From sequence record ON287376.1: a DNA stretch of 64,000 nt. The stretch is one strand, 5' to 3'. The notes below the pieces were generated by a model. The model had not been told where the DNA came from, made no database searches, and worked only from the letters and a program-made list of their open reading frames with translations. This document shows, piece after piece, positions 2,516 through 60,277 of the stretch. The position numbers and the translations under genes were made by a program. Every line of letters starts with the position of its first letter. Position 1 is the first letter of the stretch.

Positions 2516-3202
2516 ATGGAACAATTAATTGAGTTTGCTAAGACGTTCGCAATCGCTGCCCATTCTGCAATCGGGCAAAAAAGAAAGGGTAGCGACATTC
2601 CTTACTGGAGACATCCAGAGCAAGTCGCCAATATCGTAAGCCGTTACCATCCGATTCCTTCACTCATCGCGGCAGCGTGGCTCCACGACGTATTGGAGGA
2701 TACTCAGTCGGAGAAGCGGGACATTGCTTATGCGTTCTTGAATTCAAGGACGTTGCCGGATAAGGCAAGTAGTGAGATGACGATGGCTATGAAGATACTG
2801 ACTGAACTTACCGATGAGTTCAAGGGTACTCCTGGCGTTAATCGTCTGTACCGTGTGGCGGCAGAAATCCTTCGTCATTCTCGTTGCGACCTGGACGGAT
2901 TCTGGGTCGTGAAGATTGGGGACGTACTCTCTAATCTTTCGTGTAAGGATACCGTAGATCTTTCCTTCCTTCCGGTGTTCTTGTCAGAGACGTATACGTT
3001 AATGACTATGGCGCCGGAGCGCATCAAGGCTTTACCTATTTATCTCGATCTCATGACCGAGTTCGATAAGTATGAAGAAGAGGTTCAATTCAAAGAATCG
3101 CTTCGAACCGCTACTTACCGTGCAGCGATAAAAACGCTTAACGCTAAATTCCCAAAACCTTTTACTCAGGAGCAACTCCGTGACTACTTCACTTCGAAAT
3201 GA
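2516..3202 (+). CDS. SpoT/Mesh1-like HD-domain small alarmone hydrolase
   Basis: Motifs AH...Q.RK..IPYWRHP, AAWLHDVLEDT and VVKIGDVLSNL match the (p)ppGpp-hydrolase HD family. Confidence 0.85.
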   Translation: MEQLIEFAKTFAIAAHSAIGQKRKGSDIPYWRHPEQVANIVSRYHPIPSLIAAAWLHDVLEDTQSEKRDIAYAFLNSRTLPDKASSEMTMAMKILTELTDEFKGTPGVNRLYRVAAEILRHSRCDLDGFWVVKIGDVLSNLSCKDTVDLSFLPVFLSETYTLMTMAPERIKALPIYLDLMTEFDKYEEEVQFKESLRTATYRAAIKTLNAKFPKPFTQEQLRDYFTSK

Positions 3203-13771: not shown

Positions 13772-13951
13772 ACCTTTGTTAAATCACAAACCTGCCTCTA
13801 AAGGGGAAATACTGTAATCAGATAGAAACCATATACTCCTATTGAAGTACTTAACCAGTTTTGACTTACGGACTACGTGAGTCGAATAGCGTGTACGATT
13901 GTACACGTTAAACTGAGTTCCGGAACATTCGTCCGGAATAGGAGCACTACC

Positions 13952-14566
13952 ATGGAAATCGACTACGATTTCAAAACACCTAGTTTATGGATTGACAAAG
14001 GTGTTGTCGAAGACGCTAAGAGATTTAAGTCTCTTAATAAATCCGGCAAGAAAAAGTTCATTGAAGAACTAAACGACTACGCCAGTAAAATGGACGCGAC
14101 TGACTACTCTAGTGATGGATTGAATCTACTTTGTACTCTTCTTGATAATATCGAGAAGGGATATGACGTAGAGGCATCTAAGGTGGTTATCTACTGCTTG
14201 TTGAAGCGCGTTGGTTTCAATGAGCTCGCTGAGAAGTTAGAGTCAGCTACTATGGAATCGTTATTAGTTAAAATGATTTTGAAGAAAGCTGCTCGTACGT
14301 TGTTATTCTTTATCTGTACAACATACTTAAAGTCCTTTTCGATATCAGCTTTCATAGCTAAGTTTGCTTATGAATTCATGATACTAGTCGAAAAACGACT
14401 GGCGTTGATTAAAGCTGTTTTTAGATACTTTACCGTTAAAGAACATAAAGAGAAGACTGGGTGTGACCAGTCTTCTCTGATTTACGGTCTTGGTACTAAG
14501 ATCAGTTTGGTTTTCACTTTCTTAAAAAGGAAGTGGAGGAATATCCATAAGATACTGAGGAGATAA
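13952..14566 (+). CDS. Hypothetical AT-rich protein
   Basis: AGGAG RBS and ATG at 13952; hydrophobic and basic C-terminal half. Confidence 0.7.
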   Translation: MEIDYDFKTPSLWIDKGVVEDAKRFKSLNKSGKKKFIEELNDYASKMDATDYSSDGLNLLCTLLDNIEKGYDVEASKVVIYCLLKRVGFNELAEKLESATMESLLVKMILKKAARTLLFFICTTYLKSFSISAFIAKFAYEFMILVEKRLALIKAVFRYFTVKEHKEKTGCDQSSLIYGLGTKISLVFTFLKRKWRNIHKILRR

Positions 14567-20523: not shown

Positions 20524-20543
20524 TCTATATTACTTTAATGATA
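20524..20543 (+). promoter_or_regulatory. Putative early promoter
   Basis: tctatattactttaatgata is identical over 20 bp to 38903-38922 and contains TATATTAC. Confidence 0.75.
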
Positions 20544-20622: not shown

Positions 20623-20997
20623 ATGAGCGTTACATCTTTGACCAAAGTCCGTTTACCGATTCCATCTTTCTGGCGTCAAAGCGATTTGGAAAAGATCGCA
20701 AAAGCTTTGAATAACCGTAGCGTGGTACTGGGTGAAACTAACCCTACCTTCCCAGTTAAAGAACCGGGTCGCTTCTACGAAATCAAAAAGCCAACGCATC
20801 GCCTGGAAAACTTCCGTGCTACTGACGGACAGTTAACCGCAAGTGTTAAGATCATCGACCCTGAAGTGCTGGGTGACATTATCGATGGTCGTTCTTACAA
20901 TTTCAGTATCCGTCGTAACAATGACGTTTTCGCTAAAGACGGTAGTACTTGCTCAAGTGCTCCTGGTCTGATCGCGATCGATATCCGTTTTAACTAG
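20623..20997 (+). CDS. Degenerate prohead-protease-like protein
   Basis: VLGETNP...PTHRL...QLTASVKII...NFSIRR parallels the GELxHP...SH...SxR layout of phage prohead proteases, but the first His is missing. Confidence 0.45.
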   Translation: MSVTSLTKVRLPIPSFWRQSDLEKIAKALNNRSVVLGETNPTFPVKEPGRFYEIKKPTHRLENFRATDGQLTASVKIIDPEVLGDIIDGRSYNFSIRRNNDVFAKDGSTCSSAPGLIAIDIRFN

Positions 20998-21348: not shown

Positions 21349-21768
21349 ATGGCATTCAACACAACACCAGGGAAACGCGTCCTCGTACTCGGGGACGTAC
21401 CTATTTATTTCAAGGCGTACGCGAAAGCATACCGTCTTGATATAAACGACATCGCTAACGCGCTATTACAAGGTGTAGCCTATGTCCTCTCCAACGAATG
21501 GGACGCAAACAGCGACCGTGATGAGAACTTCTCTATGGCGATTCAGGACTACCTTTATTGGGAGTATGAATTAGCTCAGATAACGGAAGAGGACTTGCAG
21601 CACTTAATAGATCGTTGGGAAGAGATCATTCATAGCGTACTGGTAAACAACCGGCTAGATTGGTTAATTCGGATGGCGGAAAGTAACGGACTTGACGTCG
21701 ATAGTTGTCGAGATCGTTTCAAAGCTCGCGTCGTCAAGAATCGATTAGAGATCGAATTCCTGAGGTAA
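21349..21768 (+). CDS. Hypothetical acidic protein, same layout as the 53980-57513 array
   Basis: RVLVLGDV strand, helices, acidic core, terminal FKARVVKNRLEIEF hairpin. Confidence 0.65.
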   Translation: MAFNTTPGKRVLVLGDVPIYFKAYAKAYRLDINDIANALLQGVAYVLSNEWDANSDRDENFSMAIQDYLYWEYELAQITEEDLQHLIDRWEEIIHSVLVNNRLDWLIRMAESNGLDVDSCRDRFKARVVKNRLEIEFLR

Positions 21769-38902: not shown

Positions 38903-38922
38903 TCTATATTACTTTAATGATA
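38903..38922 (+). promoter_or_regulatory. Putative early promoter
   Basis: tctatattactttaatgata is identical to 20524-20543. Confidence 0.75.
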
Positions 38923-38998: not shown

Positions 38999-39991
38999 AT
39001 GTCTGTTATGAACTTTGAGAAATTTGTTACCCGTGAAAAGAATCGTTATTCTGTTTACAAGCTTCATGAAATGTACATCATGAAAGATAACGATGAAATT
39101 ATCTCGGTGCTACGTAAAGATCGCCCTCTGGATTCAGAAACAGAGATCGTCGTTATTACTGAGCGCGGTGAGTCGGGTATCTGGTATCTGGGCTTGCAGT
39201 CCGGCAACATGAATAACCGTAAGGAGATTAAACGTCTCCTGAAAAGAAATGCACCTAAGGGCGTTAAGTTTGAGTTCTTCGAAAAGATCCGCTTCAAAAT
39301 CGATGGCAATCAACGCTTCCTGACATCTGCGGGCAATCGTATCGCAGAAGGGGCAATGAACGAAGACTTCAACAACTGGCGTGGGCCATTCAGTGGCCGG
39401 CAGTGGAAAGAAGATCTGGGTGGTAAATTCAAAGACTACCTGAAAGAACAGTTCGACTTGCAATGGGCTCACAAAGCCATTTGTCAGCGTCGCGGTGAAT
39501 ATCAATATCTGCCCGATGTTGCGCTGTTCTTCGACACCACTAAAGATCTGGTACTGAAGTTGATTAAGCGCCCCAATGACAAGGATAGCTGCGAAGGCTT
39601 CTACGTCGGTACGCTCTATGGTAAACCATTCGGTTACCACATAGACGGTAATCAACCTAAGATCACTCAGATCGACGACTACGTCCGTCGGTCGGTTGCT
39701 GACATCACACAGACTCCAATCGAATCTGTCGAACTCGAAGGCGAACGCTTCGCTACGGATGTTAACTACGATCGCGTTGCTGACCGCTGGATTCTCAACT
39801 CTACGATCGGTGAGATTGGTCATTTGGTCAAGGGGGTTCGTCCTGATAACACTTGTGATATTCGCAAGCACGTTAAATGGACATACCGCGTTAATGGATT
39901 TGCTCTCAACGAAATTCCATTGTTGGAACCGTTGTTGGTAGAAAGTTTCCTTCGTGGTTACCATCGTCTTATTCAGCACACCACCGTCTAA
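38999..39991 (+). CDS. Hypothetical early protein
   Basis: GAGGAG RBS; 330 aa; own promoter and terminator. Confidence 0.8.
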   Translation: MSVMNFEKFVTREKNRYSVYKLHEMYIMKDNDEIISVLRKDRPLDSETEIVVITERGESGIWYLGLQSGNMNNRKEIKRLLKRNAPKGVKFEFFEKIRFKIDGNQRFLTSAGNRIAEGAMNEDFNNWRGPFSGRQWKEDLGGKFKDYLKEQFDLQWAHKAICQRRGEYQYLPDVALFFDTTKDLVLKLIKRPNDKDSCEGFYVGTLYGKPFGYHIDGNQPKITQIDDYVRRSVADITQTPIESVELEGERFATDVNYDRVADRWILNSTIGEIGHLVKGVRPDNTCDIRKHVKWTYRVNGFALNEIPLLEPLLVESFLRGYHRLIQHTTV

Positions 39992-52140: not shown

Positions 52141-53103
52141 ATGCAAACTCGTAATAGCGTCTCTATCTATGGTTGTGGCGGTGCCGGTATCGACCTGGTA
52201 AACCGTCTGCTCGATCAAGACCTCAGTGGTCTGGCTTATGTCAACGCTGCCTTCGTAGACAGCAGCAAATCCAACTTCAACGGCCGCTACGATCCTAAGA
52301 CGTGTTACGTCCTGGAAGGCGTAGATGGCTCCGGTAAAGAGCGTTCGATCAACTACCCTCTGATCGCTCGTGCAGTAGACGATGTTCTGCTGTCACACAA
52401 ACCATCCGACCTGAACATCCTGGTCTTCTCTGCATCCGGCGGTACTGGTTCAGTATTCTCACTGAAAATCGCCGAAGCGCTGTGGGAACAAAACAAAGCC
52501 GTTCTGCTGTTCGTCGTCGGTTCGACCGAAAGCGGTAAAACCACCGGTAACGTTCTGGATACTCTGTATTCGATCGATACCATGGCTCGGAAGAAAAACG
52601 TCTCTGCGGTTGTCTACTACGACACCAATGGCAGCAACGTCCGTAACTCTGAAGTCGACATCAACATGCTGACCGGTATGCGTTGGATCCTGGATCTCTA
52701 CGCAGGTACTCACCACGGCCTTGATAGCGCCGATGTTCTCAACTGGGCTCGTCCTACTAGCGGCGCCAAGGTAACTCCTCAGCTCTGCCTGCTGGACATC
52801 ACCGAAGATCGCAACGAAGCGATCGAAATCGAAGCACCAATCTCTGTTGCTGAACTGCACGGTGACGACTATCGTGGTGAAGGTACTATCGCCGCTGACT
52901 ACAGCGCGTATGGTAACCGTCGCGAAAGTGGTAAAGGTTCTCTGTACTTCAGCATCTACACCCATGGCCTGGGTTCGCTGATGGATGAACTGAAAACCAT
53001 CAAGGACGATTACGAGCGCCGTAAGGCCTCTCGTGAGAAACTGACTTCTTCTGTAATGAAGAACTCTGGGCCGTCCGAAGACGACGGGATGTTTTTCTCC
53101 TAA
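52141..53103 (+). CDS. phuZ: Phage tubulin PhuZ
   Basis: YGCGGAGID, DSS, GSGKER, tubulin signature SASGGTGS, acidic DDGMFF C-terminus. Confidence 0.96.
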   Translation: MQTRNSVSIYGCGGAGIDLVNRLLDQDLSGLAYVNAAFVDSSKSNFNGRYDPKTCYVLEGVDGSGKERSINYPLIARAVDDVLLSHKPSDLNILVFSASGGTGSVFSLKIAEALWEQNKAVLLFVVGSTESGKTTGNVLDTLYSIDTMARKKNVSAVVYYDTNGSNVRNSEVDINMLTGMRWILDLYAGTHHGLDSADVLNWARPTSGAKVTPQLCLLDITEDRNEAIEIEAPISVAELHGDDYRGEGTIAADYSAYGNRRESGKGSLYFSIYTHGLGSLMDELKTIKDDYERRKASREKLTSSVMKNSGPSEDDGMFFS

Positions 53104-53106
53104 TAG

Positions 53107-53430
53107 TATGTAGAAAACATTCTTCGTGTTTCAAAGTAGTTCAATCTTGATCTTCGGCAGTTAACGCTGCGCTTGGATTCGGATAAAACTCTGGGCGGGG
53201 TTAACCTCCCGCTCCGTTTAACAATTTGGAAAAGGTCTGAAGAAGACCAACCCCTCGCGGATTAAGTTCCGTACATTAGCCGACTAAATCGTATTCGGCT
53301 CTAAACAAGATATACCGCACTATAGATCTGCAAACAAACGTTGAACGATTGAACGCTGTAGCGTCTTCCTTCCGTAGCTATCTCCCTCGGCGACCTTAAC
53401 CGGTCGTCGGGGAGAGATATGCTATTATGA
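53107..53430 (+). ncRNA. Candidate structured non-coding RNA
   Basis: No ORF of 60 aa or more in the track; starts at TATGTA; at least 6 hairpins; ends in a long hairpin before a U-tract. Confidence 0.35.
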
Positions 53431-53456
53431 CTTTTTTGCTCGAAATGATTTCAGAA

Positions 53457-53476
53457 CTATATTACTACATTGATAG
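53457..53476 (+). promoter_or_regulatory. Putative early promoter driving the paralog array
   Basis: ctatattactacattgatag contains TATATTAC. Confidence 0.7.
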
Positions 53477-53590
53477 GAGTTTTATACTCTAGAACTTACT
53501 GTATCAAATTGTACGTAGCTTTCACTTATAATGAGGGTAGTTGCTGCACATTTGGTATTAAATTGAATCTGGTGGATTACAGGGACAATT

Positions 53591-53983
53591 ATGATTGGGC
53601 AAACTACAGTAGTAGGTAACGTACCATTGCTGTTACGTTCTATCACGAAACCTTATCCTTACTTAGTCCATGAGAACACGATCTTCCAATTGATGTTATT
53701 CACTTGGTGGAGTGTAGGTGACCTCGGCTGGGCAGAGCAGTTGTATACCTGGGTAATCAGGACGGGTAAGGATGAGCTTCCTCGAGCAGCCATGCTACTA
53801 CCGGGAAGGAACCCGGTCGATTACGATAGGATGTTATTCGAGATATTTGATAACGTCTGTAATCACGAAGACATCCTCACTGACTACATGATCTCGAGCT
53901 TCGACCATTATCGACATCTGTACATTGAGGAAATCTATTTTAGGAAAAGGGAATTCACACTGAAACTAGCGGTGAGAAAATGA
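53591..53983 (+). CDS. Hypothetical protein, first gene of the array
   Basis: 130 aa; coupled to the next gene. Confidence 0.65.
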   Translation: MIGQTTVVGNVPLLLRSITKPYPYLVHENTIFQLMLFTWWSVGDLGWAEQLYTWVIRTGKDELPRAAMLLPGRNPVDYDRMLFEIFDNVCNHEDILTDYMISSFDHYRHLYIEEIYFRKREFTLKLAVRK

Positions 53984-54345
53984 TTATACTTTACGACATC
54001 AACACGATGATCAGTATAGCGAGAAAGATAGACCCAGAACTGAGCCAAGGAGACTTGCTTGAAATATTCATATTTTGCATTACGAAAGACAATGATCTAA
54101 ATTTGGTACATCCGACTTATATTGACGGATCAAACAGAAGAGTAGCTGAGACAGTCAGGAGATTATGGCGGTTCATGCCAGGTTATAATTTCTTGGATAT
54201 AGAGGATGTTCAACTCGCTCCATTCGGCCGTGTAGCAATACACGTAGATGAAGAGGAGTTCTACGACAGAAACCCTAATGCAATCCCTAGGAGTAAGTCA
54301 TGGAGAGAATATACCGTCTCGACTACCCAATGTCTGTTCAAGTAA
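53980..54345 (+). CDS. Array member
   Basis: MIILYDI strand...FGRVAIHV hairpin. Confidence 0.65.
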   Translation: MIILYDINTMISIARKIDPELSQGDLLEIFIFCITKDNDLNLVHPTYIDGSNRRVAETVRRLWRFMPGYNFLDIEDVQLAPFGRVAIHVDEEEFYDRNPNAIPRSKSWREYTVSTTQCLFK

Positions 54346-54716
54346 TCCTGAATAAGCTGGATGGTTTGGAAGCTAAATACCGATTCCTTTATTCGTTAGT
54401 GAACACCGCTATATGGACAGGGATCTACGAAGGGGAATCGGATAAAACCCTTTCCTTCAACGAACATTATTACAACGATCACATCGAGTACGTATACGAC
54501 GACGAAGAGATGTCTGAAGAAACTCTACAGGCTAGGATGAAGGAGTTGGATTTCTTATCTGACTTATTCACTCGGCCTGAGGGAATCAATCTCTTCGAGA
54601 ACAGCCTAGCTACAATGGGTCGTTCTTTGTCAGATATCGTAGACGGTTTAGCCGACCCAGTTCTGGCCGTAGAAACCGCCTTGATTAGTCACTACGATGT
54701 TTCAGTTATGGATTAG
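54300..54716 (+). CDS. Array member
   Basis: RIYRLDY strand; acidic core. Confidence 0.65.
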   Translation: MERIYRLDYPMSVQVILNKLDGLEAKYRFLYSLVNTAIWTGIYEGESDKTLSFNEHYYNDHIEYVYDDEEMSEETLQARMKELDFLSDLFTRPEGINLFENSLATMGRSLSDIVDGLADPVLAVETALISHYDVSVMD

Positions 54717-54725
54717 AGGATTGCA

Positions 54726-55205
54726 ATGGGCAAGTTAGTTGTCGTAGATAGTTATTCGTTAACCGGGTTCTTGCTCAGTACAATACGGCAGTTTATCCGT
54801 CGGTATCCTGAGTACCGTGAACGAATCGATCCGAACATTTCGATAAACAATTTGCAAGAAACCACCGAGCGCATCATCTGGAATATCATTCAGAAGGACA
54901 AGCGTTTCGGTTCCCCGGAGTATTGGGATGAGGTTCAGGAAATCGGGAAGTGGTTCAAGGGCTACGATCCCGAAGGCGTCTATATAGACGACCGTGGTGA
55001 AGAGCAAAATAGCGATGAGATGTCGGGTGAATTCTTCCGTGAAGTTATCGACATGTACGAAGTTCGTATCCGGTCAGTATTGGGATCGATCGGCGTAGAT
55101 CTCAACTGGGAATATTTGGAGTACGAGAAATCTACACCAACCGCTCTTCTATTACGGAGTCACGGTGACTATCGTATTTACGATTATCACAAACGTAATG
55201 GGTGA
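54726..55205 (+). CDS. Array member
   Basis: KLVVVDS strand...PTALLLRS hairpin. Confidence 0.7.
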   Translation: MGKLVVVDSYSLTGFLLSTIRQFIRRYPEYRERIDPNISINNLQETTERIIWNIIQKDKRFGSPEYWDEVQEIGKWFKGYDPEGVYIDDRGEEQNSDEMSGEFFREVIDMYEVRIRSVLGSIGVDLNWEYLEYEKSTPTALLLRSHGDYRIYDYHKRNG

Positions 55206-55208
55206 GTT

Positions 55209-55556
55209 ATGAGGACATGGTTGATTCCAGTAGAAACGCTACGGGCAAGATACACGAGGTTACTCGATAATGTAGATCGGGATGCGAAGAACTCAGTTAA
55301 CGTTGAAGTGCATCTGAAATACTTGTTGGCTAACCTCATGGAACCCGATCTCTTCTCCTACCGTGTTGATGAGATAGCGAACGACTTGAGTATGTTTGGT
55401 TTCGACCATATTGTCTTTGATTGTTTGGTCTTGGAGGTTAGTGATTTCTTCAAGAAACAAATCGTCTACCACACCGGATTACCCCCGCATCTTTTCGAAG
55501 GAAACTGGCACCTTGACTTCCCAACAAGAACGTTATCGGTCAGTGCATATTGTTGA
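55209..55556 (+). CDS. Array member
   Basis: RTWLIPV strand...PTRTLSVS hairpin. Confidence 0.7.
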   Translation: MRTWLIPVETLRARYTRLLDNVDRDAKNSVNVEVHLKYLLANLMEPDLFSYRVDEIANDLSMFGFDHIVFDCLVLEVSDFFKKQIVYHTGLPPHLFEGNWHLDFPTRTLSVSAYC

Positions 55557-56016
55557 TATCTCGAACCTACTCAGTCTATTTAAAGTCATGGTGAGTCCGT
55601 ATGGGCTCTCCGTGGCTGATTGTGTTCGGGTAGCATTCCTTTATGCCATGACCTATTCAGTAAACAGTGATGGATCCTCTGTCTTTGACATGAGGTTACG
55701 TTATCGTATCGTTAATGAGATGGAGGTACTGGTCGAGAAATCGTTGATCAAGAATCCACTTAATAACGAAGAGGAGTATGAATTACATCGGACTAATATC
55801 TACCTGATGATTCAGAAAATGTCTCGTAATCTAGGGCCGCAATCCTCAGGGTACTTCGGCGTTATTGATTCTATAGAGGATATAATGTTCGATTTTGATC
55901 TCACCTTAGGAACGCTCTATGTTAGATTTAAGAAGCCCGCCTGGGAGGCATTCAAAGAGAATAGTTCTATATCTCGATTACAAAGAGGAAATCCACGATC
56001 TCTATCTCAGCCTTAG
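55543..56016 (+). CDS. Array member
   Basis: Probable GTG start (HIVDI strand)...LGTLYVRF hairpin. Confidence 0.65.
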   Translation: MHIVDISNLLSLFKVMVSPYGLSVADCVRVAFLYAMTYSVNSDGSSVFDMRLRYRIVNEMEVLVEKSLIKNPLNNEEEYELHRTNIYLMIQKMSRNLGPQSSGYFGVIDSIEDIMFDFDLTLGTLYVRFKKPAWEAFKENSSISRLQRGNPRSLSQP

Positions 56017-56326
56017 TAAAGACTGGGGGATCATTGGAGCACCTCGATTGTTGATCGAAGGGGCTATCAACTCTATTACGGCCTCTACGCCTCCTAAGGT
56101 AATACTTAAGGAACTCTCCGAAATCATCATGTTAGTTCGTAATCCGTTCTTCCAGAAAGAGAATTGGGATATGAACAACTGGATGTCTGACGCGCTCGTT
56201 TTTTACGGCATGTTTCAAAAGTTCTATGCGCATGTTCTGCTTGCCAGGAACTTAACCGGAGAGTACTCCGTATCATCTATCGACTTCAGTCAATCTTCAA
56301 TAAGGTTGATGTTGGAGAAACCATGA
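55919..56326 (+). CDS. Array member (start uncertain)
   Basis: RIVLYLDY strand...SSIRLML hairpin. Confidence 0.65.
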   Translation: MLDLRSPPGRHSKRIVLYLDYKEEIHDLYLSLSKDWGIIGAPRLLIEGAINSITASTPPKVILKELSEIIMLVRNPFFQKENWDMNNWMSDALVFYGMFQKFYAHVLLARNLTGEYSVSSIDFSQSSIRLMLEKP

Positions 56327-56763
56327 TTAACCGTAACTTCACTTCCACGGCACTATTCGAGATTCGTGGATGGAATGCAAGTGTTCTAGATGCATTCGTA
56401 AAGAGGCACGCTCCGGATCTAACTGGCCCGGAGTTACTTAAGTATGCTGCTCAGTTGTCTTTGGATTACTACATCCATCCCAATGGAGAAGCGTTTGATA
56501 ATCTCCAGGATAATCTTGAAGAACAGTTTGGTTATAACGAGTTGACGGAAGATAGCCCGGATTACGTTTATGAGCAAATTGAACGTGAAGTGCAAGTATA
56601 TGTGGAAATCGTATCTGACTTCGCAAGGTATCTTGATAAAGAAATCGAACGCATCGCCAGCCGTATCGACATCCCGTTGAGCCGAGTCAGTATTGATCGT
56701 GCATTCGTACGCGGGCACACATTCGGTTTACAGTTAGTCGATTATGACCGGGAGGTTTGGTGA
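56323..56763 (+). CDS. Array member
   Basis: ALFEI strand...GHTFGLQL hairpin. Confidence 0.7.
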   Translation: MINRNFTSTALFEIRGWNASVLDAFVKRHAPDLTGPELLKYAAQLSLDYYIHPNGEAFDNLQDNLEEQFGYNELTEDSPDYVYEQIEREVQVYVEIVSDFARYLDKEIERIASRIDIPLSRVSIDRAFVRGHTFGLQLVDYDREVW

Positions 56764-57215
56764 GCACCGTAGCTAAAGTAATTGTCTTTGAAGCACTTGA
56801 GTATTTAAGGCTGTTGGAAAACCTGTGTTCTGTAGTAGAAGCCTCTGACGAAATGGTATATGTCAGCCGTGAAGGTATTACCCATTGTATTCTGGATGAT
56901 ATCATGAGCGGAGGCACATTCGAGGGTTCTATGCGGGGCTATGTGTTTGCCGATAGCAAATGTAAAATGGATGTTGCTCTTGAAATAATCGAAGAGCAGC
57001 GTGAGTTATTAAGGAATGAATTGACTCAGGTAATGATGCGTCAGTGCATGGGTGTAATCAAAGATGCCTCTTTCATTGATAACTTCACCATACTCGGGTT
57101 AACTAAATCCATTGCGATGAGATACCTGACAAATGATTCTGAAATGTTACCACAGCAGCGTATATCTCCCCGTCGTAATTGGGGAATACGTAGACGCGAT
57201 AACCGGGCGTATTAA
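56757..57215 (+). CDS. Array member
   Basis: KVIVFEA strand...DNFTILG hairpin. Confidence 0.7.
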   Translation: MVSTVAKVIVFEALEYLRLLENLCSVVEASDEMVYVSREGITHCILDDIMSGGTFEGSMRGYVFADSKCKMDVALEIIEEQRELLRNELTQVMMRQCMGVIKDASFIDNFTILGLTKSIAMRYLTNDSEMLPQQRISPRRNWGIRRRDNRAY

Positions 57216-57513
57216 GAAAGAGGCTAGCGAGTCTGGGGTAGATCTGGAGATCGACCCCGTCTTCGTCATGGAAGAAGCCGTTAAAGAGATTGAATGGTGT
57301 TTTGTTGAACTGTTGTCTCTCGAGGAAGGGGCACCGCCTACTTTCGATTGGTTAATTAACTCGAGTTTACCTGCAATCAATTTCTATCGTTCTTTGATGG
57401 ATACCGACGTCTTCACCCATCTACGCAATGAGGAGTTCGACTTCGTAAGTCTGGATGTTATGAATTCTTGCGAAATCTTAGTAACTCTGAAATGGAGAAG
57501 TAAAAATGGCTGA
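57133..57513 (+). CDS. Array member
   Basis: Helical core...SCEILVTL hairpin. Confidence 0.65.
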   Translation: MILKCYHSSVYLPVVIGEYVDAITGRIKKEASESGVDLEIDPVFVMEEAVKEIEWCFVELLSLEEGAPPTFDWLINSSLPAINFYRSLMDTDVFTHLRNEEFDFVSLDVMNSCEILVTLKWRSKNG

Positions 57514-57931
57514 AGCAGGTAACAAGATCCTGGGTAAGTTTAACCTGGGTGATCGGGTTACGTTCCAGATTTACCCGGTGACACTTTACGGTGACATTTT
57601 CCGTAACTGCGTCCCTACTGACCTTATCTCGTTCAAGTCAACGCCTCGCTTTAATGTCGATGCTGCCGCTGAACACGCTAAGGTTTACAACTTACTTCCA
57701 CCTGGCCAAGCGCCAAATGACCCTGCGGGTTATAAGTGGTTAGTAGTTACTCTGGAGAACGGCGATGAGCGCGTAATCGGGTTACCTTGGATTAAGGTTG
57801 ATACAATCCAGGTAATCCAGGTGGTTAACACCTACGTGACTATCCCGAACACTGCCCCAGAAGATCAAGAGAAGATTCGACTGGCACTCTCTGCCGCAGG
57901 TTTCAACGACGTCGAAATCAATCAGCGATAA
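57506..57931 (+). CDS. Conserved phiKZ-like protein upstream of the DNA polymerase (SH3-like beta-barrel)
   Basis: EHAKVY..LP...P.DP..Y.W......G...VIGLPWI; synteny. Confidence 0.75.
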   Translation: MAEAGNKILGKFNLGDRVTFQIYPVTLYGDIFRNCVPTDLISFKSTPRFNVDAAAEHAKVYNLLPPGQAPNDPAGYKWLVVTLENGDERVIGLPWIKVDTIQVIQVVNTYVTIPNTAPEDQEKIRLALSAAGFNDVEINQR

Positions 57932-58048
57932 CATACTCCTCCCTCTGCCATTAGGCAGAGGGAGGGCTATTTATTCTCTTTCTTTTTTCTTTTACGTCAT
58001 GGGCTGATGGTATAGATGAAAGTTTAAGATTAGAAAAAAGGGATTAAC

Positions 58049-60277
58049 ATGTCCGCTAATATTCAGAACCCATTTAATCGTCCTGCGTCACACTACACGC
58101 GTAACATCGATGTCATTACAGGCTACATCGAACAGAATACTTTACTCCTCCATAAGTCAACTGGACTTCCGATGGATGAGTGTGAAGCTTTCGTAAGAGA
58201 AGAACTCTTCGAAGGCCCGAATAAAATGAAGGATCCTGAGTTCCTGTTATTGGAAAGGGACGACGAACTCGACCAGCATCCTAAAGCAGTGAAGTTTACT
58301 CAGTACATCAGTACAGTGACTTCAAACGGCTGGTTACTGGCACCTACCTTCACTACGGTACTACCACCGCACATCAAACAGTCTCTGCTTTCCGAATACA
58401 TCAAAGGAAACTTGAGCAAACGTTCCGCTGAGAAGCACTTGATGTTTGAAGCCGAGCGTAAAGGTAATGGTTTTAAAGCTACATTCCACAAGAACAACCA
58501 GAACAACAAAAAGATCCTGAACAACGCCATCTCTGGTAACCACCGTTCTGAGCACAGCCCGTTACATGACCGTAGTACTCACCCGGTGCTGACTTCGTGC
58601 TGTCGTATTGCTAACGGTAGCGCTAACTCCAACGATGATCGGCTGTTGTCCGGTAACCGTCACTATTGGAAGCCTGAAGTTGTACTGAACAATATCAGTA
58701 GTATCCTCAGCCTGAGCAATTGGGACGAAGTGGAAGAAGCGGTAGTGAAGCATAACCTCCATATCCCGACAGTGGATGAAGTTATGGAAGTTATCCGTTG
58801 GGGTAGTGACCTTTATTGGGGCCGCGGTAACCCTGACTCACCGGCTCACCGTACAATCCGTAAGTACGTAGAGGGTTGCACGGATATCGAGCGTGCAGGT
58901 ATTGTTTATACCGGCGACCTTTACCACTTACGTAAATACAACGAACCGTTAGTACGTGACTTCATCTCTGGTTTGGTTACTCCGGCTACTGAGATTGACC
59001 CTGATCATGAAGCGTGGCTGAAACACGTAGATGATGACACCATCGCACAGATGAAAGTTATGTTCCCACACATTCTCTTGGAAGAGGATCTTTGGGACGA
59101 CTACGAAGAAGTGAGTCAGCGTGAAGGCTTTGGTCTGATGGGCACAACGTGCAAACAGATCTACCAGAAGCTGGACAAGTATAAGGAGATCATCAACGTC
59201 TTCTTCATGTCTAAGAACATTCCGTTCCTGACTTGTGACTTCCCTCACTCCATCCGTCGTAGTGGTGTAGGTTCAGATACAGACTCCGCAATCTTTACGG
59301 TACAGGATTGGGTACAATGGTACTCTGGTCACAACCGCGTGAACCATGAGAACATCATCATAGCCGAATCTATGGGCTTCATTGTATCTCAAACCACAAC
59401 ACACAACCTGGCTAGCTTGGCGGGTAACATGGGTGTTGTAGAACCTAAAGAAGTATTCCGTCTCTCAATGAAGAACGAATACCTGTTCCCTATCTTTACT
59501 CTTACGTCTCGTGCTAAGCACTACTTTGCTAACATGGCGGTACAAGAGGGGGTAATCTTTAAGAAGTATAAACGTGAGAAGAAAGGTGTGGAGTTAATCG
59601 CATCTAACTCACCGGCCGGGGTACGTGCTGACCTTGATAGAATCATCGAGGAAATCACTGACCTGGCTACGGAAGATAAAAAGATTAACCTTGCTCGTTA
59701 CTTACGCTGGGTAGCTCGCTGGGAATACACCATTTACGATTCTATTCGTAACGGTGAAGTAACTTACCTGAAAGCTGCTCGTGTAAAAGAGGAAGATGGT
59801 TACGAAGGTGAAAACACCCCTTACCTGAACTATGAGTTGTGGCAGGAAGTGTTCGCACCTAAGTATGGTTTGATCGAACCGCCTCCGTATTCTGCTTTGG
59901 CGTTTAGCATTATTCATGACACCAAGAAGAAAACGGATAACTGGTTGAATACGTGGGAAGATCAGGAGATGGCGGGTCGCTTCCGTAAATGGTTAGCGTC
60001 TAAAGGGAAGGGTTACGTTGGCCGTATGTTGCTGCCTGAGAGTATCATTATCTCCATGGGTATTCCATCAGAGATTCTGGATGCAATCGACGTACGCAAG
60101 ATTATCGGTTCAGCAATGAGCCCGATGTACCTGGTCTTAGAGAGCCTGGACTACTATCTGTTTGACAGTAACCAGACTCGTCTTATCTTTGACCACATCG
60201 ACCGTGACGTAGCCTTTATGGACGTAGACCAAGTGGACTCAGCACTTCGGACTCAAGTAGCTGAAGAGTTCGATTAA
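58049..60277 (+). CDS. Family-B DNA polymerase, catalytic subunit (phiKZ gp50-like)
   Basis: KKILNNAISG (motif B), GSDTDS (motif C), KNEY, KHY, KKGVE. Confidence 0.92.
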   Translation: MSANIQNPFNRPASHYTRNIDVITGYIEQNTLLLHKSTGLPMDECEAFVREELFEGPNKMKDPEFLLLERDDELDQHPKAVKFTQYISTVTSNGWLLAPTFTTVLPPHIKQSLLSEYIKGNLSKRSAEKHLMFEAERKGNGFKATFHKNNQNNKKILNNAISGNHRSEHSPLHDRSTHPVLTSCCRIANGSANSNDDRLLSGNRHYWKPEVVLNNISSILSLSNWDEVEEAVVKHNLHIPTVDEVMEVIRWGSDLYWGRGNPDSPAHRTIRKYVEGCTDIERAGIVYTGDLYHLRKYNEPLVRDFISGLVTPATEIDPDHEAWLKHVDDDTIAQMKVMFPHILLEEDLWDDYEEVSQREGFGLMGTTCKQIYQKLDKYKEIINVFFMSKNIPFLTCDFPHSIRRSGVGSDTDSAIFTVQDWVQWYSGHNRVNHENIIIAESMGFIVSQTTTHNLASLAGNMGVVEPKEVFRLSMKNEYLFPIFTLTSRAKHYFANMAVQEGVIFKKYKREKKGVELIASNSPAGVRADLDRIIEEITDLATEDKKINLARYLRWVARWEYTIYDSIRNGEVTYLKAARVKEEDGYEGENTPYLNYELWQEVFAPKYGLIEPPPYSALAFSIIHDTKKKTDNWLNTWEDQEMAGRFRKWLASKGKGYVGRMLLPESIIISMGIPSEILDAIDVRKIIGSAMSPMYLVLESLDYYLFDSNQTRLIFDHIDRDVAFMDVDQVDSALRTQVAEEFD

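Follow-up and report, generated by a model that had tools for sequence, protein, structure and literature searches.

The locus described here bears on the selection of cargo for entry into the phage nucleus. In phage phiKZ, the open reading frames (ORFs) orf47 and orf48 are imp2 and imp4, which were found by nuclease-fusion selections, and their products were proposed to be cargo-specific factors (bioRxiv 10.1101/2024.03.27.586873). A later preprint called Imp2 and Imp4 cargo-specific adaptors, and both genes are without disruptive transposon insertions (PMC12676376). They lie directly upstream of gp49 and gp50, the position that an earlier reading of the present DNA (the original prediction) had correctly given for some phiKZ nuclear-import factor genes. 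The DNA analyzed here is a stretch of 64,000 nucleotides (nt) from sequence record ON287376.1, referred to as the window, and its source is Serratia phage vB_SmaM-Kodama (Moabitevirus), a chimallivirus, i.e., a nucleus-forming jumbo phage. The analysis concerns an array of ten small genes on the plus strand, g01 to g10 (53591-57513), located between PhuZ and the DNA polymerase gene. The new observation is that, in enterobacterial chimalliviruses, the genomic position of Imp2/Imp4 is occupied by a conserved ten-slot operon, and that several of the slots are predicted to share a fold nearly confined to chimalliviruses.

A fixed ten-gene operon

Over this region the window was 100% identical to Kodama and approximately 99% identical to Moabite, 2050HW, and other members of Moabitevirus. 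The locus consisted of a gp42-like head protein gene (minus strand), PhuZ (52141-53103), a 487-nt non-coding gap, g01-g10, g11 (57506-57931), a terminator, the DNA polymerase gene (58049-60277), a minus-strand head protein gene, and the chimallin gene. The ten ORFs encode proteins of 115-167 amino acids (aa), with g06 started at TTG 55513. A 4-nt ATGA overlap couples g01 to g02, and the remaining junctions are gaps of 3-9 nt or overlaps of 46, 44, 98, 4, 4, and 83 nt. The expectation of ten tightly coupled ORFs behind one promoter, with the motif TATATTAC at 53458-53465, was borne out.

A total of 19 arrays were collected, 15 of them complete and four partial. Their sources were the annotated phages Totoro, Centimanus, KpLz-2_45, PCH45, SPLA10, and Ea277G, together with contigs from IMG/VR, metagenomes, and Logan/NCBI; few extra loci came from polymerase-based scans of viral and metagenome contigs. 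Clustering and iterative hidden Markov model (HMM) searches revealed ten slots in identical order in each of the 15 related phages and contigs for which the array was complete. The order was kept across Moabitevirus, Siatvirus, FBKp24-like, PCH45-like, and Iapetusvirus genomes, the polymerases of which are only 55-65% identical between genera. All complete contexts ran from a DUF7484 gene (minus strand) through PhuZ, about ten small genes, an SH3DP gene (the g11 family), and the divergent polymerase to a minus-strand gene and chimallin. Each slot is its own orthologous lineage, and some lineages have diverged past sequence recognition between genera. Since the same ten-slot order recurs across genera, the array is an old, fixed-order operon throughout the enterobacterial chimallivirus clade and not the product of a recent or lineage-specific tandem expansion.

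The ten array genes are real and under purifying selection. In comparison with phage Totoro, non-synonymous differences per site (pN) were far below synonymous ones (pS) in all ten genes, including g07 and g10, and the ratio of the corresponding substitution rates (dN/dS) was 0.11-0.22 where dS was unsaturated. The array proteins were 46-76% identical to those of Totoro, compared to 87-95% for g11, PhuZ, and the polymerase, and they evolve 2-6 times faster than these three. The codon usage was also distinctive, as had been noticed earlier: AGA and AGG comprised 37% of the array Arg codons against 14% in the other ORFs of the window, and ATA comprised 24.5% of the Ile codons against 6.5%. The GC content was 43.5% in the array versus 47.5%. 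The ten proteins had been described as acidic, with most starting in a short hydrophobic strand ending in D, E, or P. Net charges ranged from -17 to +3, and strong acidity was a property of g03, g08, g10, and g04 only. The N-terminal strand was found by a strict rule in 6 of the 10 array ORFs and in 13 of 72 control ORFs (Fisher p = 0.009).

Promoter and terminators

The motif TATATTAC lies 133 nt 5' of g01 within the putative promoter element TTTCAGAAC-TATATTAC-tacatTGATA (53449-53477, plus strand). It was present in three copies in the window, all on the plus strand; this number alone is not significant, as 27 of 100 shuffles also reached three. The extended motif TTTCAGRNC-TATATTAC-N5-TGATA is common to the three sites. 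All 15 relatives checked carried TATATTA[CT] (one has TATATCAC) and, after N5, a TG (TA in a single relative), at a distance of 29-150 nt 5' of the first array gene. In Table 2 of PMC7058600, TATATTAC is the predicted phiKZ promoter and TATATTACDWHDGTG is listed for 201phi2-1; the extended Kodama motif fits the extended 201phi2-1 consensus given there. The phiKZ virion RNA polymerase initiates at AT-rich early promoters (PMC10914365). Judged by its core, its flanking consensus, and its conserved position, the putative array promoter is of this phiKZ-type early class, served by the virion RNA polymerase, and the array would be expressed early in infection. The other two extended copies, at 20526-20533 (upstream of ORFs 20623-20997 and 21349-21768) and at 38905-38912 (upstream of ORF 38999-39991), are probably further early promoters.

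The PhuZ transcript is predicted to end at a GC-rich, imperfectly paired hairpin with a run of T after it (53375-53428, plus strand), which was mapped from an annotated terminator of the 99%-identical Moabite (2976-3029 of that locus). A strong bidirectional terminator hairpin of 13 pairs (57937-57966), found here and also annotated in Moabite, closes the operon before the DNA polymerase gene. Together, these two terminators bracket g01-g11, and the sequence signals define a single predicted transcription unit, which comprises g01-g10 and the gp49-like g11, with a phiKZ-type early promoter at its head and the strong terminator at its end.

The 487-nt gap after PhuZ (53104-53590) holds the terminator hairpin and then the promoter, and a gap of 205-945 nt was present at the same place in all relatives. 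A Rfam scan of 53000-58100, which includes this gap, revealed no credible RNA family.

Predicted fold of the array proteins

Structures were predicted with AlphaFold2 for g04 and g08. The g08 model (predicted local distance difference test [pLDDT] 84.3, predicted template modeling score [pTM] 0.80) consisted of a strand at residues 5-12, helices at 19-29, 35-51, and 56-68, a long helix at 80-114, and a hairpin of strands 122-130 and 133-144. The g04 model (pLDDT 90.0, pTM 0.84) consisted of a strand at residues 3-8, helices, a small hairpin inserted in an acidic segment, a long helix at 98-121, a hairpin of strands 129-136 and 140-148, and a terminal helix. The two models have a common topology, in which a strand at the N-terminus is followed by a stack of helices, one of them long, and by a beta-hairpin at the C-terminus, with no detectable sequence similarity between the proteins. 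The architecture described in the original prediction was thus recovered in the two proteins that the models cover.

Foldseek searches were conducted against BFVD, a library of approximately 350,000 models. Nearly all of the top 50 matches of g04 and of g08 were proteins of phages that we take to be chimalliviruses, and nine targets were common to both lists. The g08 model matched the PhiEaH1 orthologue of g08 (E 1.5e-7) and also the PhiEaH1 orthologue of g06 (E 3.6e-3, probability 1.0, template modeling [TM] score 0.52-0.54). Two proteins with adjacent accessions, which by length fit neighboring PCH45 array genes upstream of g04, were likewise retrieved by g08 (probability 0.97-0.98), and the g04 model matched the PhiEaH1 slot-10 protein (probability 0.80). 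Named hits came from PhiEaH1, PhiPA3, 201phi2-1, Psa21, and Ea35-70 and also from Goslar, Noxifer, RP12, and others; of the 16 from the first five phages, 15 were located inside the PhuZ-polymerase array. These were five proteins of PhiEaH1; gp038, gp039, and gp044 of PhiPA3; gp74, gp79, and gp80 of 201phi2-1; four of Psa21; and one of the two of Ea35-70. The sole one of the 16 outside the array was a 114-aa Ea35-70 protein. UniProt accessions of Moabitevirus array proteins were absent from the top-50 lists, and no cross-slot mapping was obtained from them.

Foldseek comparison of g04 with PDB gave no match (best E 0.45, TM below 0.25), and profile searches of PDB sequences with g04 and g08 were empty or spurious. 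Scans of the array proteins against Pfam, NCBIfam, and PHROGs revealed nothing above threshold and no sign of an enzyme. The predicted structures and their Foldseek matches show that at least g04, g06, and g08 share one small alpha/beta fold without a solved relative, and on the same models this fold appears to be restricted to chimalliviruses.

Relationships among the slots

The original prediction had further proposed that the array is an old expansion of one fold, to be examined by all-against-all HHalign. Slot alignments of 2-19 sequences, which are shallow, were compared using hhalign with column-reversed targets as controls; a first round on alignments of 2-7 sequences, with a maximum probability of 4%, was superseded by this comparison. 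The best cross-slot pairs were g05-g09 (38%, 106 columns) and g06-g08 (27%, 94 columns), followed by weak links of g01 to g03 (17%, 84 columns) and to g08 (13%, 130 columns). Eight cross-slot pairs exceeded the best reversed-control score, and 33 pairs were above the 95th percentile of the controls compared to 10.5 expected. Matches of at least 80 columns with a score of at least 17 were produced by eight real pairs and by no reversed-control pair.

At the sequence level, iterative searches from Kodama seeds gave no cross-slot match. The exception was a phmmer match between a g06 orthologue and g08 of Totoro (18.5 bits, collinear over 95 residues). The apparent merging of the g06 and g08 families comes from this single edge, and iterative searches do not cross between them; it is therefore supportive and not decisive. 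Cross-slot matches in iterated profiles were not counted, as their E values were 0.007-0.07 once the core profiles were unbiased. Chou-Fasman secondary structure prediction on the alignments was discarded, with a three-state accuracy (Q3) of 0.47-0.50 against the AlphaFold models. ORF 21349-21768, put forward earlier for comparison with the ten proteins, gave an hhalign match to the g01 N-terminus (28%, above reversed controls) that spans only 25 columns and is too short to interpret.

From the models and the profile comparisons together, we infer that paralogy of great age, on one fold, unites most if not all of the slots, the cores of which persisted while the surfaces diverged. The proposal of one expanded fold was thus supported in part, by the common topology of g04 and g08, the g06-g08 match, and the long collinear alignments between slots; g07 and g10 had no link, and no cross-slot pair was individually significant.

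Homology to the phiKZ gp43-gp49 cluster

Outside the enterobacterial clade, g04 aligns to residues 2-150 of phiKZ gp43, a family that includes PhiPA3 gp039, 201phi2-1 gp75, Psa21 gp039, and a 325-aa Goslar protein. The hhalign probability was 76.7% (E 2.1e-5) over 144 collinear columns, with a score of 40.9 compared to 26.4 for the best reversed control, and the aligned region includes a common C-terminal GD(Y/W)R motif. Foldseek comparison of the g04 model with PhiPA3 gp039 gave E 4.3e-4, probability 1.0, and a TM score (TMq) of 0.52; the gp43 homologues of Noxifer, Psa21, and Goslar were matched with probability 0.98-1.0. Thus, g04 is clearly homologous to the N-terminal domain of gp43. Likewise, g11 matched phiKZ gp49 by blastp (3e-17), its orthologues carry Pfam PF20287, and the gene that follows it encodes a gp50-type polymerase. 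Given the homology of g04 to gp43 and of g11 to gp49, the array corresponds to gp43-gp49 of phiKZ.

Comparison with the phiKZ cluster, which had also been proposed earlier, was fruitful for g04 and gave no profile similarity to Imp2 or Imp4 above control levels. Iterative HMM searches never crossed between the array slots and the Imp2 family (gp47, PhiPA3 gp044, 201phi2-1 gp79), and word-indexed protein searches with g04, Imp2, and Imp4 revealed near-identical proteins only. At the level of predicted structure, the g04 and g08 models retrieved the Imp2-family proteins PhiPA3 gp044, 201phi2-1 gp79, and a 178-aa SL2 protein. The 183-aa Psa21 gp042, placed in the Imp2 family by length, was retrieved by g08 only, and Imp4-family 201phi2-1 gp80 by the g08 model alone.

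Possible function and alternative explanations

A conserved operon, a shared fold, and import-related binding modules, taken as a whole, offer the best explanation of the locus, which we hold tentatively and at somewhat less than an even chance. Its functional part is more doubtful: by analogy with Imp2/Imp4, the array proteins may act as partner-recognizing binding modules that license or tune nuclear entry. The import-adaptor role is a positional hypothesis, proposed solely from where the array lies. Under this hypothesis, each slot protein would be a non-enzymatic protein-binding module recognizing one partner, which could be a cargo, a nuclear-shell component, or a part of the PicA/Imp1 import machinery. 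The slot protein would license or tune entry of that partner into the phage nucleus, as proposed for Imp2/Imp4. Early expression would supply such adaptors while the nucleus is under construction, and fast evolution under purifying selection could reflect co-evolution with partners.

Several observations weigh against this explanation. Imp2, Imp4, and Imp5 were reported to be conserved only in Pseudomonas phiKZ-like phages (bioRxiv 10.1101/2024.03.27.586873). The hhalign scores of the array slots against the Imp2 and Imp4 families were no better than those of reversed controls (best against Imp2, 18.0), and the Foldseek matches to these families, with TM 0.2-0.43 (0.19-0.43 for the four Imp2-family models) and probability 0.06-0.66, are weak and below the usual same-fold threshold (TM of at least 0.5). 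Pairwise BLASTP of the ten proteins and ORF 21349 gave nothing below E 0.047, no cross-slot pair was individually significant (the best being the 38% noted above), g07 and g10 were without a link to any other slot, and g02 was only weakly linked. The models cover only two of the ten proteins, and unnamed BFVD hits were assigned to array genes by protein length. Poor codon adaptation would fit low-abundance accessory genes of any function as well.

A serious possibility, still on the unlikely side, is that the array combines assorted early proteins for host takeover or anti-defence, which would be alike in size, helical content, and operon but without common ancestry or import role, and the fast evolution of which would be driven by an arms race with host targets. 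The early-type promoter, the 2-6 times faster change than in neighboring core genes, the atypical codon usage with lower GC content, and the lack of significant pairwise similarity among slots would all suit such a set. Several members are strongly acidic, as are many phage inhibitor and DNA-mimic proteins. However, genes of takeover and anti-defence usually differ from one relative to the next, both in whether they are present and in how they are ordered, whereas here ten slots stand in one order across genera with 55-65% identical polymerases. The g04 family extends to Pseudomonas phages and Goslar, the g04 and g08 models agree in topology and have Foldseek neighbors in common, and phiKZ imp2 and imp4 occupy this position without disruptive insertions; all of these argue against a mixed origin.

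It is quite unlikely that the ten genes serve replication, encoding assembly factors or accessory subunits that would be co-expressed and work with the divergent DNA polymerase and the SH3 protein of gp49 type, the genes of which follow directly downstream. The array does lie directly upstream of the gp49-like gene (PF20287) and the polymerase (PF20286) in 15 of 15 complete contexts, and g11 is predicted to be co-transcribed with it. However, the strong terminator stands between the operon and the polymerase gene. Conservation is normally high among accessory proteins of replication, whereas the array proteins are 46-76% identical between species whose polymerases are 95% identical, and no similarity to clamps, clamp loaders, primases, single-stranded DNA-binding proteins, or any PDB entry was found.

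The suggestion that g04 is a thymidylate-kinase-like enzyme, taken from the Moabite annotation (CPT_Moabite_030, citing HHpred matches to PDB 5X86 and 3HJN with probability 61) and in keeping with an initial hydrophobic strand like that of P-loop kinases, is extremely improbable, since g04 lacks a GxxGxGK[ST] P-loop, has no Pfam or NCBIfam match, gave an empty profile search of PDB sequences, and produced no kinase among its Foldseek matches to PDB; the label is contradicted by these results, and the protein is instead a homologue of the gp43 N-terminal domain.

Returning to the import-related explanation, papers on transposon insertion sequencing (Tn-seq), antisense oligomers, and the nucleus interactome mention none of the cluster gp numbers searched for, save imp2 and imp4. 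JADA, the activator of Avs5, was considered as a link and rejected, as it is phiKZ gp124 and unrelated to the array. Should the import hypothesis prove false, a fold family without a solved structure is nonetheless defined by the array, and a misleading g04 annotation is corrected.

Individual genes of the operon

The first gene, g01 (53591-53983, plus strand as are all genes of the operon; 130 aa), had a dN/dS of 0.17 against Totoro and a slot-1 family of nine members. The g02 product (53980-54345, 121 aa) carries the N-terminus IILYD and belongs to a family of 15 across the clade; its only hhalign match was a short N-terminal one to g04 over 17 columns. The fastest-evolving slot was g03 (54300-54716, 138 aa, net charge -17), 46% identical to Totoro; its family could be recognized by sequence only in Moabitevirus, and positional equivalents were present in every array. 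The most conserved slot was g04 (54726-55205, 159 aa), the single-domain homologue of the gp43 N-terminal domain.

The shortest protein was that of g05 (55209-55556, 115 aa), for which the iterative search gave 13 members and the hhalign slot alignment contained 18; its family member in Erwinia phage pEa_SNUABM_54 adjoins a gp43-like gene. The start of g06 (55513-56016, 167 aa; ORF open from 55396), a predicted paralogue of g08, was set by alignment to the Ea277G orthologue and by a Shine-Dalgarno-like AGGA. The g07 product (55919-56326, 135 aa), the gene of which overlaps the g06 tail by 98 nt, was 73% identical to Totoro, the overlapped part included. For the modeled g08 (56323-56763, 146 aa, net charge -13), 1.84 billion representative proteins were searched with a HMMER profile of the g08 family; the search retrieved only 15 small proteins, all near it in length (136-164 aa), and all eight matches for which contigs were read were in the g08 slot.

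The g09 gene (56760-57215, 151 aa) starts at GTG 56760, with TTG 56757 also possible; 16 of the 18 matches in its iterative search were in its own slot, and its hhalign slot alignment contained 15 sequences. The g10 product (57133-57513, 126 aa, net charge -12) is best conserved in its N-terminal part, inside the 83-nt overlap with g09. The last gene, g11 (57506-57931, 141 aa), is a homologue of phiKZ gp49 (Pfam PF20287, SH3DP) and lies outside the fast-evolving set, with 87% identity to Totoro. Each of the chimallivirus arrays examined contained a member of its family, invariably right before the divergent polymerase (PF20286).

Long out-of-frame overlaps were observed between g06 and g07 (98 nt, 55919-56016), g09 and g10 (83 nt, 57133-57215), and g02 and g03 (46 nt, 54300-54345). 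In the overlapping genes, both reading frames were conserved in comparison with Totoro.

Annotation of the locus

In public annotation all ten small ORFs are hypothetical, except for the "thymidylate kinase-like" label of Moabite g04. The Kodama record omits g06, shortens g05 to 111 aa, and gives g10 as its last 81 aa only; the Totoro record leaves out g07 and g10; and the Moabite record has a short minus-strand ORF instead of g05. Despite these differing calls among near-identical records, the selection analysis backs all ten plus-strand genes. Phage vB_ParM-25, with Pectobacterium aroidearum as its recorded host, was 99.2% identical to Serratia marcescens phages over the region. Elsewhere in the window, ORF 13877-14566 had the lowest GC content (0.38), with AGA/AGG as 7 of 12 Arg codons and ATA as 5 of 17 Ile codons, and may be a recently acquired gene.

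Comparison with known systems

The Kodama array and the phiKZ cluster have much of their layout in common. Both g04 and gp43 are located in an operon that ends with a gp49-like gene, ahead of the polymerase, and phiKZ Imp2 (gp47) and Imp4 (gp48) occupy the same position as the array, directly upstream of the gp49 and gp50 homologues. Imp2 and Imp4 (127-178 aa) are also similar in size to the array proteins. The two clusters differ in that gp43 is a two-domain protein of approximately 305-365 aa, whereas g04 is without its C-terminal half of about 200 residues; g04 and all 17 clade orthologues, of approximately 157-191 aa (ORF-extended), comprise the N-terminal domain only. Moreover, three slots precede g04 in Kodama, while gp43 opens the phiKZ cluster. 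Erwinia phage pEa_SNUABM_54 bridges both layouts, with a 158-aa single-domain gp43-like gene followed by a g05 homologue.

An unlikely, far-reaching extension of this comparison is that the ten Kodama slots, the gp43 N-terminal domain, Imp2, and Imp4 form one chimallivirus-specific superfamily on a fold without a solved relative. Every nucleus-forming phage would then have, at a fixed place beside the polymerase gene, a battery of fast-evolving paralogous adaptors that would set PicA/Imp1 admission. The array suggests that import specificity may come from an ancient paralogue family, and it supplies specific candidate adaptors that can be tested in tractable systems, namely PCH45 (Serratia sp. 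ATCC 39006) and Goslar-type phages (Escherichia coli).

The array also resembles the tandem paralogue arrays of small, fast-evolving proteins that are generally known from large phages, which are likewise clustered, co-oriented, translationally coupled, divergent, and partly of a common fold. In contrast to such arrays, the copy number and order of the Kodama array are fixed across genera, with no expansion or contraction, and each slot is maintained as a slot-specific orthologous lineage.

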